Made by a program: the position numbers and the translations under genes. The notes below the pieces were generated by a model. It did no database searches. It was not told where the DNA came from and saw only the letters and a program-made list of their open reading frames with translations. Source: Chlorokybus atmophyticus (taxonomy: Eukaryota > Plantae > Mesostigma and Chlorokybus algae). Taken from it: a stretch of 64,000 bases of DNA. The stretch is from assembly GCA_009103225.1 (NCBI GenBank), contig RHPI01001311.1, forward strand, positions 62,001 to 126,000, in the 5' to 3' direction. Shown piece after piece: positions 1 through 6,190 of the stretch (position 1 is its first letter; each line of letters opens with the position of its first letter).

Positions 1-434
1 ATATGTTTCCAGCTGCAGCGGGGTTGGTGGTAGTTCTCACCCATACACCACAATCTGACTATTGTCAGCTTACTTAGTGTTAAAATATTGTGCACCCAGG
101 TCTAGGTGTGCGGATATTGCAGCCTGCATTGTAACAGTACAATCAAACTCCTTGTTGTAAAGGTGCCAAGCCTGTCATGCCACGTCCATATCACGCCTAG
201 TTGTAGGGAATAACTTGCCTGCTGAACACACGAGGGTGCAGTTGTGTTGATTCAAACTGTGTATGCACAGGGGAAAAGCGCTTGAGTTCTTGTTCTTCAC
301 CAGATCAAACAGGCCATGCCGGCTTGACAACATCACAAGTCGAATATGTAAGCTTGTTTCTGCTTCTTGTTTACTCAGGCAAATTACCAACTCTGTGTGC
401 GACTGAACAATGTGTTACATGATATCTCTGGCAG

Positions 435-3400
435 TTGGCGCGTGTCTATCTAGACAGATTGCTCGAGGCCCTCGAACAACCTGAGTTGGCCACGGGCCCT
501 GAGGACGCCCTGGAGGCAGCAATCGAGACAGAGGTTCTTATCATTGAACAAGCTTTGAAGGAATACATCTTCTATATAGAAGCTCTGAGCAGAAATCTTC
601 CAAAAGAGGCTGAGAAAGAAAGACTTGTCAAGCAGTATGCAAAGCCAGTCGTCCGTATGCTGGTGAAAGACTTCTACTGGGACGACCAGAACTACTGCTT
701 CCAACCTGCTGAACTGCGCAAAATTAGCCTGCAAACACTGCAGTCTCTGGGAGAGCAGCTGGAGAACTTTGCCGGCAGCATCGAACCTGAAGGCCAGGCT
801 GCCAGTTGTACACCAGTCGCCCATCCACGAGGTGATTGCACATTTGTTGCCTTCCCTGCAATCTCTGCATGACTTCTTGGACATTGTTAGCCTACATTCC
901 AGCGCCACCAGACACCATCTCTGAGGCCTTTCTTACTGCAGGAGCGCCTTCGCTCAACCCAAAAGAGTTGTTTATGGATGCCGTTAACAAGGCCATAGAG
1001 CCACATGCAAACACACGCCAGCAGCCTGTTGAGCGCTCAACGTTTGTTGACCAACAGTTATCAGCGTTGTACCGACAAGCTGAAGCGCTCAGTCGACGGA
1101 AGGACAGGTCGGCTGCCCTGCGAATTTGTCGGAAAATGGAGGCCTCTTTCATCAATAAGCGCCGCACGGACGGAGCTCACTTGGTACTCGTTGGAAGAAC
1201 TCAGTCCGGAAAATCCTCCACTGTCAACTTCTGGTGCGGTATGAAGGGGTTGCTTCCAGAAGGAGATGGGGAGTCGTGCACCGTGTACCCCATGGAGGTC
1301 GTTGGATCCCGCGAGTATCAACATGGCGACCTTGGAAGCCAGAGTCTGAAGCTCAATGTGCTAGACACGCCTGGTTTCTTGGACACCGGCGGTCCTGAAA
1401 CCGATGCCATAAACATCTGCAGAGTGCGCCAGTATCTCCATGACCAGCACTTTGATGGACAGACGTGTTTTCCCAGCGTAGTCTTAGTGGTATTTGACAT
1501 ATCGGAGTCAACACCATTTGGCAGAGATGGTCAATATACCAAGGTACGCCAATGCTTTCATTAGTGCTGGCAATCAGGCCTTGCTATATGCGTCGATGCT
1601 GACAAAGCAAAGCCCTGCAGGTTGTGCGCATGCTTACGCTTCTTGAAGTGGTGGATGTGTCCACGCCAAATATTATCCTCGTCTTTAACAAAGCCTGGTC
1701 GCCGAGAGATGCCCAAAAGCAGTATGATGACAGAAACAAATGGCCCCGTCTGATTGAGAAGACCAAATTGTTGGTTGCAGACACGCTTCGCCTCAGTTAC
1801 ATTCCCTGCCATGTGCTGCAAGAAGCCAAACAATCCAATCTTGACGATGTCACAAAGGTGCGTCAAGCAGCATGCGTTGGTGGTTCTCCAAAGAACACAC
1901 TCCGCTACTCTCTGTGTGCCATCTGCGTGGCTACTTGCACTGACCGTTAACCTGTCCCATGCCTTGTGCACTGCATGGCAGGCCAATCCGCAATACAGGG
2001 ATGGGCAGTTTTACAAAATGCCCGATGGCTCGATGCAGCCGAGAGACCTTTCACGCAAAATTCAAGTAGATATTGGAGGTCCCGTGGTCCGCATGCCACG
2101 GGTGCCCAGTGAAGACGGAGATCCAGTGCTGCGCTTGGCGGCTAGGGAGTGGTTCAGAAGCGAGGGCCGTGCGAACGTGGTGCTCAGACAGGTCAGGCAT
2201 TGGGATAGGTGGTGACACAACGCGCACAAACGCAGAGCCTGCCTCTCCCCCATTGTGCGCTAATCATGCCTAACAGTAGTGTCGCGATTGGCAGGTTTGC
2301 ACGGACCCATCTGAGGAGGACGTGCAACGGACTCTAGTTCAACTGAAGGGTTTGGATGCAGACTGCGCTGACAAGTCGTATTGGAAGAACATCCTGACAG
2401 CAACGGCATGTAGATTGAACGGTGGTCCTCAGCTGTCAGAAGACCAGGAGAATTCAATACAACGGCTGGCACAGGCCTTAGCGAGCTCCAGCATACCACG
2501 CCAGGAAGTTTTGAAGAACTCCAGCATGTCTGCAATACGGGTATGAAGCTTGACGCTTGGCTTTTACCACATGGTTGTTTGTCGACTTCGCTATTCACAC
2601 CTCAGTTCATGCGATTATGCTACCCAGATCTGGTTGGTTGGGCATAGCTTCAAGCTCGACGCATACATGGAACAGCTGCTGGAGCACATGGGCGTGAAGC
2701 TGCAGCACAGGTTTCCGGCCCATAGTCTCCTTGTTGGGAAGGGTTACGATTGCAGCACCAACAAGGCACTTGGCCAAGTGTTGAAGCTGGACGCCGAGAG
2801 GTAGAAGCAAACAAGCATATCATATTACTCGTTATCTGCTTATCATAGTAGATTTGCATTGCCTGACAAGTGCTCTTGCTGCGAGTTGCGTTTTGCAGCT
2901 GCTGCTGGCATTCTATTCTCAATGGTACACTGGACTTTCCGGACTGGCTAAATGTTTATGAGTCAAGATTGGAATACCACGAACGACAGGTTTATGCACC
3001 AACGCCAAGTTGTAATCCGCTTGAGGCATGCTGACCCCTTGCCTCTTGCAGGTTGCCACCGAGTCCAAGTTGCAATGGGTTGCGGGACTTGCTCGCTGGC
3101 TTGCAACTGCATGGTCGAATTACCGTGCAGGTATCCGCCTTGACAAAGTGCAAAGCTCGTCGGCTGGCAGGACGGCTGGCAGTGGTAGGTACTACGTTGC
3201 TACTCACGAGGTTGCACTGAAGCCATTGGGTAGCTCGGATTGTTACCCTTTTACCCCTGAGTTTGAGGGGGAACTTCAAGCGCTCCCAACATCCTTCCAG
3301 GCTGATTGGCGAAGCTTGCGTTCGTTCCAAAGGTTATATCTTTCTTTCTAGTTGCGTTCGCTCGGCTTGTTTGAGTTGTCATTCCAGACGCTTGCTCTAA

Positions 3401-4464
3401 TTGCGGCATAATTGAATGCAACAGATTCTTTGACTTCTTCGGCAGTCACCTGCTGCAAAGCCACCAAGTTGGCGGCATCTTGGAATGGGACTACAGTTCC
3501 AAGTCAGCAAAAGATGATTCCCATATAAAATCAGCAGGCGCAGCCACAGGAGTTGTCCGAGCAGATGTGCAAGCCAGCTTGGTATGTACTCACAGCACAG
3601 TTGGTGTCTCTGTACGCTTGTCAGCTGTCAGCGATTACTCTGCACGCACACTCGCAATCGCGTGCATGCACATACGCATGCATGCACACACACACTGGAA
3701 CTTTTGGAAGAGTGCAAAACTGAGTGCTGCAGATTTGCGCGCCCAACCTGACTATGCCTGATTGCATTCTTGAAGTAAGCGCGTCTGCCATACAAACCAA
3801 ATGTTGGCATTTTGACAGGCCGCCTCGTTCAACAAGGGGACAATAGGAGCAGATGGTGAGCTGCATCTGACAATCTCGAGCTCAGGCGGCCAGCCGCCCC
3901 AACTGGACAACAATGAACTCACTGACAAGGCTCTGGTTGACTGGAAGAACACTATCCGTGCTGACAGTAGTCACAAAGGCGCTGCATCTTTCATCCTGGC
4001 AGAAAAGGTATCAAGTGGCTGCGGTTGCATCAGTGCATTATTGATGACGTGCTAATAAGGACGTGCAGAGTCCGGGAGCTTTACTTCCTATCTACCATCT
4101 ACTTCCCAACAACCACTTGAAGTATCAAGCGCTAAGCCAGGCATGGGGTCACTTTTATCGGCAACAGTCGTTGAAGCTAACCAAGGGCCAACAGTTTACC
4201 TGCAACACGAGCACGCGTAATAGCGAGGCCAATCAGGATGCGAAAAATGAGAAGATCAGAGATCGAGGACTTGCTGGTTACAAGCGGTACTTGTTCCCAC
4301 TTGTAGGTGCTGGCTGCGTAGGAGCAGCTGCTTTCCTTACAACAGTGACCTTGCCCTTCGTGGCTGGCGGGCTTGGCATTAGCGCCATCGCAGCTGCCGG
4401 GATGGCAGCGCATCAGTATATCAGTCAGCCTCCTCAACACACCAAGTCATCGAAAGGTGATTGA
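435..4464 (+). CDS. AIG1/Toc34/septin-like P-loop GTPase - MACPF (perforin-like) fusion protein with C-terminal hydrophobic hairpin; 11 exons, about 1009 aa, 5' end not determined
   Basis: Manual splicing with GT-AG sites and consistent phases gives exons 435-831, 891-1543, 1621-1857, 1982-2191, 2295-2540, 2628-2800, 2899-2989, 3052-3332, 3425-3581, 3819-4007, 4069-4464 (3030 nt, in frame). GTPase motifs: G1 GRTQSGKSS, G2 GESCT, G3 LDTPG, G4 VFNKA. MACPF motifs: PEFEGELQALP, RFFDFFGSHLLQSHQVGG (matches Y/W/F-G-T/S-H-x-X6-GG), SGG...DWKNTI, LLPIYHLLP...QALSQAW. A possible extra upstream exon lies at 271-347. Confidence 0.85.
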
Positions 4465-6190
4465 GCCTGCTGTTACTGACTGTGCTTAACTGTTAGTTGT
4501 AAGCTAGTCAGTCGCTTTCATACCTAACTCTGGAACCATGCAGTGTAATACTTGAGTGAGTCACACCCCGGCAACACCACGTAAGCTGTACTTGTTATGT
4601 ATCAAGTGTGAGCTGTCAGTAACGCTCACTACTGTGTAGAGTGTGTGTGTCATCATGACGTATCGTCATGATGCGTGTGTGTGCATGCGCGTGTGTGCAT
4701 GTGCATGCACAACCAATCACATCCGATACACGCACTCGTACACGCACCCATGCACGCACTCTCACCCCACAGGCACAAAGGGCTGGTTGCTCCATGTCGC
4801 ATCTGTCAAGGTTGGTGACATCGTTTGTCAGTCAACCGCAACCTCTGCCTCCGTGCTTTACTCTGAAGTGGTGGTGCTGCCGGGTGCAGCCTTGCTAGTC
4901 GATCCCTACCTGCCTGCCAGTGCATGCACGCACATCGGAACTGACCCCCTTCTCTTGGCTTGTTGTTGTAGTGTAGCCTTGTGTTGCTGGTTATTTGTCA
5001 TCAGTCCTGCCTGTTTGCTATGCTCGTGTCTACCGTATGCACACACGCATGCACGCTCATGCGCACGTTAATGCTGTCATGCGCATGTACGGCATGCACA
5101 TGCAATGTAGTGGTAGTGTTGAGATTCAACTCAAGCTACTTGGCTACCCCCAAGTTGGGGGTAGCGAAGTAGCTTGAGAGTGAGTCTCTGGCCCGGTAGT
5201 CAAGATTGATTGTAAACGTCTATGCACAGCTAGATGTTTTGCAAGGTCATGATGGTTTTGTGCATGTTAACACCCCATTTCATTCATTGTACACATGCAT
5301 GTCTGCAATTTTCGAGCGGCATGCATCCGTGATTGTATACTTGAGTGCTGGTAGAGTTGCATATGACTTAAAACGTGCAGTAACGTTCAAGCGCGCACTA
5401 CTGCACACGCCTTAGAAGATACAAGTGCACACGCAATGCAAGCATGCACAATACTCGCATGCCCATATGTGCATGTGGTCTTCATGATTGGTAATTAGTG
5501 TACTTTCGCCGTAAGAATCACATTTGTCATGCATCAATTGCTTCCACCAACGGCGTCATTCTCTTGAGATCTTGGTGATTATGAACATAGCACGGGGTCA
5601 TTCTCTCGAGATCATGGCGTATTTGATAATAGCAAGTTTTTAGTAATTAATAGCGGAAGCATGCTATTAATGAGGGATTAGTTAATAACCCTATGCCGGG
5701 TCAACACACGCTGATGTGGCATGCACCACTTGATTGAATTTGATAATGATGTATATAATTAGCACATGCTTTGCTTGTTACATTCATTTTAACAACAACA
5801 TCTCATGCTAGTAACAAGGTGGGTTCCCCATTACAACAAAAAGCCAACGACATGATTTTGCCTTCCCTTTGGTTATGTTGTGTACAAGAATCTTCTCTTG
5901 GCCGACAACATATGCTTGTAAAACCATTCGTCGTTGTCAAAGTTATAATCTCAGATTTATTCACCCATCAAGCTGAGGGGTGAATATAACAACAAAAGTC
6001 TTCTAGCAACGGAAGATTGTAATACACATGATATGTGCATGACATCATATGTTTATGATGCACATACGTGAGGCACGCACACGTGCACATGCATGCTTAC
6101 GTACACCTATTGATGACCCGATAGATCCATGCATTCATGCATGACTGCTCGGGTTGGGCGGTCGTTGTTGGCTGGGCGGGGTTGAGTGCT

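Follow-up and report, generated by a model that had tools for sequence, protein, structure and literature searches.

An expressed gene of the alga Chlorokybus atmophyticus encodes a putative GTPase fused to a MACPF domain and has relatives in animals and a fungus

A single expressed gene at the left end of a 64,000-nucleotide (nt) stretch of the Chlorokybus atmophyticus genome (contig RHPI01001311.1, positions 62,001 to 126,000 of the forward strand; here referred to as the window) encodes a putative GTPase domain and a MACPF domain within one protein. The gene has 13 exons, and its product comprises, from the N to the C terminus, a helical region of ∼245 amino acids (aa), a G domain, a helical linker, a MACPF domain, a polar spacer, and a hydrophobic segment. 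Evidence for this architecture comes from transcripts, Pfam, fold searches, and a family profile. Within an uncharacterized G domain-linker-MACPF family, the protein is highly divergent yet collinear with the other members; the family is present in sponges, ctenophores, cnidarians, molluscs, hexapods, and one glomeromycete fungus as well as in the alga. The fusion had first been proposed from the letters of the window alone (hereafter, the original prediction).

Results

In the region 270-4464 (+ strand), the track of open reading frames (ORFs) shows fragments only; splicing of these fragments at GT-AG boundaries yields a single open frame. We placed on the window the assembled contigs of three public runs, X1 to X3, which come from two studies and whose label as RNA is a guess. 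These contigs contain 54-65% of the sampled words of the stretch, i.e., about its exonic share, and all ten short GT-AG introns of the original prediction are missing from them, with the ends joined at positions that recur in the two studies. Because the contigs are without any intron, they represent processed transcripts. One predicted boundary had to be moved: the acceptor of the intron at 832-941 is 941/942 and not 902/903, so that the next exon starts at 942 instead of 903 and encodes 13 aa fewer. A 3,450-nt contig of X1 is continuous from 435 to 4456 and covers both the G-domain and the MACPF exons, and a 1,472-nt contig of X3, the independent study, is continuous from 2348 to 4456. The X1 contig rules out an artefact of two separate genes and bears out the single gene originally proposed. 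By tblastn, no paralogue was found elsewhere in the 64-kb window. A single base is missing at 1726, within the G-domain exon, from a low-depth contig of X2 (depth 8 of 16), probably through misassembly or as a rare variant.

When the G-domain exon was searched exhaustively with phmmer, a 100% identical protein of 1043 aa, P0001, was retrieved; it is the entry jgi/Chlat1/6181/Chrsp42S05736 of C. atmophyticus in EukProt. The spliced window sequence equals residues 26-1043 of P0001 exactly. Thus, the public annotation already contained the fused model, unnamed and with no function assigned, and this model replaces the ∼1009-aa frame of the original prediction. The contigs also yielded an exon further 5′, at 270-347, and place the first exon to the left of the window. 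The N terminus of P0001 is polar, and there is no signal peptide, the absence of which fits a cytosolic protein. Residues 1-245 have no Pfam match and an Atlas look-alike search with them returned nothing usable; nor was there a Pfam match in residues 480-640 or 940-1043. The linker, originally put at ∼280 aa, is ∼150 aa long (residues 491-639), and in an AlphaFold model a helical bundle at ∼540-636 connects the G domain to MACPF.

The MACPF domain spans residues ∼640-950. On the full-length protein, PF01823 matches residues 752-850 with 25.5 bits against a gathering score of 21.5 (E = 1.7e-5); a Pfam scan of single exons missed the domain entirely, and it appears only with the full-length protein. 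The signature FGSHLLQSHQVGG (802-814) fits [YWF]-G-[TS]-H-[FYL]-x6-G-G, and VGKGYD (651-656) fits G-x-G-Y-[DN], while the former departs from the strict PROSITE form (GTH[FY]) in having S for T and L for F/Y. This signature had been thought to become visible only on splicing 3052-3332 to 3425-3581; however, it lies wholly inside 3425-3581, and only the residues preceding it cross the junction. The landmarks GKGYD, F..V..LP, FFxxFGSH-x7-GG, a second GG, W..S/T (W..T in the alga), and PI..L align with those of the relatives described below. In pore-forming MACPF proteins, two segments, TMH1 and TMH2, refold into membrane hairpins; in P0001, TMH2 (∼819-865) alternates between hydrophobic and polar residues (VRADVQASL). 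An AlphaFold model of residues 600-1043, built on the family alignment, has core blocks with a predicted local distance difference test score (pLDDT) of 85-97 and a mean of 55.7. With this model, Foldseek found 59 matches in the PDB at E ≤ 0.001, and all 50 of the 50 matches listed are MACPF proteins: TgPLP1 is the best (E = 4.8e-9), followed by C9, perforin, C8, C6, MPEG1, and pleurotolysin B, and Astrotactin-2 is also among them. A phmmer search with residues 620-1043 against PDB sequences gave no match. The Pfam match above threshold and the fold matches agree with the MACPF domain of the original prediction.

The G domain covers residues 245-490. Its G1 P-loop GRTQSGKS (268-275, with K274) and its G3 motif DTPGFLDT (325-332, with DTPG at 325-328) are canonical, and the latter carries the AIG1 hallmark DTPGxxDT. 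A complete set of G1 to G4 had been claimed; this is only partly borne out, as G4 is atypical. The canonical forms of G4 considered were NKxD, or T[HR]xD and THAQ in the AIG1/GIMAP/Toc34 clade; the alga has NKAW (407-410), without the canonical Asp, and its relatives have (L)THxxS, likewise without Asp. The Pfam domain MMR_HSR1 is matched at its cut-off (21.9-22.5 bits against 21.9). An AlphaFold model of residues 200-640 has a pLDDT of 76.9, and its best Foldseek matches are Toc34/Toc33 (Toc34 1h65/3bb1, E = 3e-8, TM-score by target 0.58-0.64), with GIMAP7, GIMAP1, and GIMAP2 next. As modeled, the G domain is of the Toc34/GIMAP (AIG1) type. A class-3 lipase motif was absent from all 75 matches of the G-domain search; therefore, no relation of this domain to lipase-GTPase fusions is shown.

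Beyond the polar spacer, residues 986-1027 (window 4288-4413) form a continuous Gly/Ala-rich hydrophobic stretch of 42 residues, 16 residues from the C terminus, which corresponds to the segment originally noted. Kyte-Doolittle windows exceed 1.4 without a break over this stretch, prolines lie near its start and middle, and basic residues flank it. Based on its hydrophobicity, the stretch is predicted to insert into a membrane as a C-terminal hairpin anchor. In 10 of the 12 relatives whose C-terminal tails were scanned, a Hedgehog-type Hint module follows the MACPF position (one of the ten, P0023, has no detected MACPF), and in Mytilus this module is preceded by a canonical GCF cleavage motif. 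Pfam found no Hint module in residues 940-1043 of P0001, in which the hydrophobic hairpin occupies the same position. Many, though not all, members of the family thus carry Hint. The C termini of the Xenia proteins P0005 and P0076 are a single hydrophobic helix, and that of the metagenomic ENA protein P0035 is a Gly-rich hydrophobic hairpin of ∼41 residues similar to that of the alga. Most relatives have no signal peptide. Hedgehog Hint domains self-cleave and leave a sterol on the new C terminus, and Toc34 and several GIMAPs (GIMAP1/2/5) are tail-anchored. From this, we infer that a C-terminal membrane tether is a theme of the family that is reached in two ways. The exchange of Hint for a hydrophobic hairpin at one position leads directly to a hypothesis for membrane tethering in this family.

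Fusions of this kind are not confined to the alga. In 22 of the 75 matches of the G-domain exon, the G domain is followed by a related MACPF region. Relatives with a named source come from Mytilus species (mussels; XP_052105978.1 of Mytilus californianus), Xenia sp. (a soft coral; XP_046852782.1), the ctenophore Bolinopsis (XP_063691366.1 of Bolinopsis microptera), the springtail Orchesella, the sponge Oopsacas (KAI6656826.1 of Oopsacas minuta), the glomeromycete fungus Gigaspora rosea (RIB04758.1), and the gnat Bradysia. In every relative found, the GTPase precedes MACPF, and the opposite order, which the original prediction gave for stonustoxin-like proteins, could not be confirmed. A family profile was built from 17 relatives with the alga left out; its positions 15-651 of 675 align collinearly with residues 247-898 of P0001 at 186.6 bits and an E-value of 6.8e-50, calculated for a space of 1.8 billion sequences (Z = 1.8e9). 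Because this is a single collinear match, the G domain, linker, and MACPF descend jointly from a common fused ancestor. The alga and its relatives also have in common the family motif GDWT.LP.G..QP after the G domain. The alga protein is 17-26% identical to the G-MACPF relatives and at most about 30% identical to any relative; P0001 itself is the only match of the exhaustive search below 1e-30, and there are no close kin. Searches of the word-indexed type with the whole protein, the C-terminal region, and the family alignment returned only P0001 and one Bradysia protein. Because the taxonomic spread rests on one exhaustive search and the word-indexed searches returned almost nothing, it is incomplete. 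In a tree of G domains, the alga falls inside the subfamily and is not nested among the animals, on a very long branch (1.97 against a median of 0.47) without a resolved placement.

Our literature search, which covered a minority of subscription journals, did not turn up any account of an architecture of the GTPase-MACPF or the GTPase-MACPF-Hint type; proteins of the types AIG1+Hint and CARD+AIG1+Hint have been reported in amphioxus (PMC12373286). Within the family, domain content varies. Some relatives (P0008 and P0005) have two tandem G domains before MACPF, and in P0008 the order G, G, MACPF, Hint is encoded by one ORF of 1459 aa on a 5.3-kb ENA contig. The Orchesella proteins P0056 and P0030 have N-terminal extensions of ∼255 aa with weak beta/gamma-crystallin or syncollin-like matches, and the N terminus of P0056 is hydrophobic and signal-like, unlike the rest of the family. 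P0023 (947 aa) has two subfamily G domains followed by Hint with no MACPF region detected between them, and these G domains cluster with those of Mytilus P0020. A G-Hint frame can therefore exist without the perforin part.

Discussion

The combination of domains described here is compatible with a protein that acts as a GTP-gated MACPF pore former on the cytosolic face of a membrane, in defense or cell death. We regard this scenario as evenly balanced between being right and being wrong. We suggest that, after synthesis in the cytosol, the protein would be retained by its C-terminal hairpin on the cytosolic face of an internal membrane or the plasma membrane, much as Toc34 and GIMAP1/2/5 are held by their tail anchors. 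Nucleotide binding would then lead to dimerization or oligomerization of the G domains across the nucleotide pocket; nucleotide-dependent dimerization or oligomerization is established for Toc34, GIMAPs, and septins. Assembly of the G domains would concentrate and orient the MACPF domains, which could form a ring in which TMH1 and TMH2 unfurl into a β-barrel, either in the carrier membrane or in an apposed one, for instance on an organelle or an invader. Hydrolysis would return the switch to its starting state, and the 245 N-terminal residues unique to the alga may sense or regulate. The likely use of such a device would be cell-autonomous defense or regulated cell death. In the animal members, the Hint module would provide the same C-terminal membrane tether by another route.

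Several findings weigh against this scenario. The PF01823 score is weak, S-S-GG in the alga replaces the W-x-GG motif of the family, and TMH1 (∼657-748) is long, at 92 aa, and not clearly amphipathic. Moreover, confidence in the MACPF model is only moderate: TMH1 and TMH2 are modeled as helices at a pLDDT below 50, and the tail is modeled poorly. Many members of the MACPF superfamily do not form lytic pores. AIG1 (PF04548) stays just below the Pfam gathering score of 27, with 23.1 bits for the whole protein and 26.7 bits for the exon, the latter value, like the 22.5 bits for MMR_HSR1, coming from an earlier exon draft (905-1543). Because G4 reads NKAW without the guanine-specifying Asp and AIG1 is sub-threshold, specificity for GTP, and even hydrolysis, are putative only. 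Finally, because its branch is so long, the alga protein may have drifted in function.

Some of these points are those expected if the MACPF domain were non-lytic and served in membrane binding, remodeling, or signaling, as in astrotactins, BRINPs, Torso-like, or CAD1/NSL1, with the GTPase controlling localization or turnover. The low PF01823 score, the loss of the family Trp before the second GG, the long and poorly amphipathic TMH1, the low-confidence modeling of the TMH regions, and the presence of Astrotactin-2 among the fold matches are all consistent with this alternative. However, the signature, both Gly-Gly hinges, and the alternating TMH2 are retained, and the best fold matches, TgPLP1, C9, and perforin, are pore formers; we consider a non-lytic role possible but rather improbable. 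The doubts about nucleotide specificity bear on a different alternative, in which the G domain is not a GTP-hydrolyzing gate but a scaffold or dimerization module that is independent of nucleotide or binds ATP or another NTP, any pore being triggered via the unique N-terminal region or otherwise. The absence of the canonical Asp from both NKAW and the (L)THxxS of the family, the sub-threshold AIG1 score, and the position of the alga's G domain as the most divergent in the tree would all be accounted for in this way. Yet the P-loop GxxxxGKS, the switch-II motif DTPG, and the hallmark DTPGxxDT are intact, the fold is that of Toc34/GIMAP, and Toc34 binds GTP despite a non-canonical G4; we consider this alternative unlikely.

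A third alternative concerns the origin of the gene rather than its function, namely that it is a contaminant or was recently transferred horizontally from an animal and is not a resident algal gene. All named relatives are indeed from animals or a fungus, with no other plant or alga among the named matches. By contrast, at least 12 short GT-AG introns interrupt the gene, which sits within a 64-kb window of the same assembly and is represented by transcripts in Chlorokybus runs from two studies; its identity to any relative is about 30% at most, and its long branch has no resolved placement and is not nested in any animal group. Based on the tree placement, a recent transfer or contamination is unsupported, and we consider this explanation highly improbable.

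Returning to the GTP-gated pore former, it can be compared with several known systems. The animal and fungal G domain-MACPF-(Hint) proteins share with the alga the order G domain, helical linker, MACPF and the family motifs, whereas the alga differs by its extra ∼245-aa N-terminal region, NKAW in place of THxxS, and a hairpin in place of the usual Hint. Perforin-2/MPEG1, structures of which are among the fold matches, resembles the alga protein as predicted here in having a MACPF domain tethered by a C-terminal hydrophobic anchor; however, MPEG1 has a signal peptide and a P2 domain, faces the lumen, and lacks a GTPase, while P0001 has no signal peptide, and its G domain would depend on nucleotide from the cytosol. 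Toc34/Toc33 and GIMAP1/2/5 share the G-domain fold, DTPGxxDT, and a C-terminal anchor, predicted in the case of P0001, with the alga protein; they differ in having no MACPF, and P0001 in turn lies under the AIG1 threshold and has a different G4. CAD1/NSL1, also MACPF proteins, belong to the streptophyte lineage and are linked to immunity and cell death. They are not known to have a G domain, and none came up when the alga's G domain served as the query. The interferon-inducible GTPases GBP and IRG provide a functional analogy only, in that GTP-driven assembly on membranes leads to membrane damage in cell-autonomous immunity; they belong to another GTPase class, and the damage does not come from a fused MACPF.

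Pore formers of the MACPF type are familiar as weapons that are secreted or face a lumen, and GIMAP/Toc34 GTPases as membrane-bound dimerizing switches with unclear effector functions. A GTPase, a MACPF domain, and a C-terminal anchor in a protein without a signal peptide would amount to a nucleotide-armed perforin acting inside the cell, and the algal copy is expressed and intact. The family turns up in animals ranging from sponges to mussels, in one fungus, and in a streptophyte alga of an early-diverging lineage, which suggests an old, patchily kept module of cell-autonomous immunity or cell death. More tentatively, and with more doubt than confidence, we propose that these proteins may be "GTPase-perforin" executioners that operate on the cytosolic side of membranes and make up an ancient family spread across eukaryotes, in which GTP-driven oligomerization would nucleate the MACPF pore and the tether would be a lipid installed by Hint in most animal members or a Gly-rich hairpin in Chlorokybus, Xenia, and one metagenomic member. 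If true, such proteins would be cell-autonomous effectors of immunity or death distinct from gasdermins, MLKL, and secreted perforins.

Gene organization and flanking sequence

All exons and introns are on the + strand. The first exon, with the ATG and residues 1-25, lies left of the window: 255 loose contig letters precede 270 and end in codons for ...GARSTAPV. The exon at 270-347 encodes residues 26-51 in an open frame agreeing with P0001 and is followed by an upstream intron at 348-434, as seen from the joint 347->435. The ten introns confirmed by contig joints are located at 832-941, 1544-1620, 1858-1981, 2192-2294, 2541-2627, 2801-2898, 2990-3051, 3333-3424, 3582-3818, and 4008-4068.

The exons between these introns were placed from the contigs. 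The exon at 435-831, which also agrees with P0001, encodes residues 52-183 within the alga-specific N-terminal helical region and is joined (831->942) to the exon at 942-1543, which encodes residues 184-384 with the end of that region and the first half of the G domain. The second half, including NKAW, is encoded at 1621-1857 (residues 385-463) and was assigned with the help of the alignment. The exon at 1982-2191 (residues 464-533) carries the family-specific motif RDGQFYKMPDGSMQP (469-483), identified by alignment and profile, and the start of the helical linker, which continues at 2295-2540 (residues 534-615), where the model has helices with a pLDDT of mostly 64-93. The end of the linker and VGKGYD, which by alignment is the first MACPF strand motif, are encoded at 2628-2800 (residues 616-672). 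Based on the model, TMH1, the first MACPF helical cluster, is encoded in part at 2899-2989 (residues 673-703), and its remainder, together with a central MACPF strand, at 3052-3332 (residues 704-796), the latter exon also being reached by the Pfam match of the full-length protein. The signature FGSHLLQSHQVGG and the start of TMH2 lie in the exon at 3425-3581 (residues 797-849; Pfam and alignment), and the remainder of TMH2, the second Gly-Gly (872-873), and WKNTI lie in that at 3819-4007 (residues 850-912; alignment). The last coding exon, 4069-4464, encodes residues 913-1043 with the C-terminal MACPF motif LLPIYHLL, the polar spacer, and the hydrophobic hairpin, and ends with the stop codon at 4462-4464.

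An optional last coding intron at 4457-4543 is spliced in X1 and X3 and retained in X2. The C terminus reads ...SSKGD when it is retained and ...SSKV when it is spliced, in both cases beyond the hydrophobic hairpin. Contig joints also define an intron at 4581-4772 in the 3′ untranslated region (3′UTR), and the 3′ ends of the transcript contigs lie near 5003-5010. Some 120 nt past the last of these ends, a 24-nt inverted repeat at 5130-5178, with arms 96% complementary and 1 nt apart, may represent a hairpin or mark where a small element ends. Low-complexity tracts of the GCATGCAC or ACACGC type occur in both orientations at 3640-3700, 4665-4770, and 5037-5066, i.e., in the intron at 3582-3818, in the 3′UTR intron, and downstream of the gene. 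Because contigs of a further run, X6, touch only these tracts and continue into unrelated sequence, the tracts look like a dispersed simple repeat.

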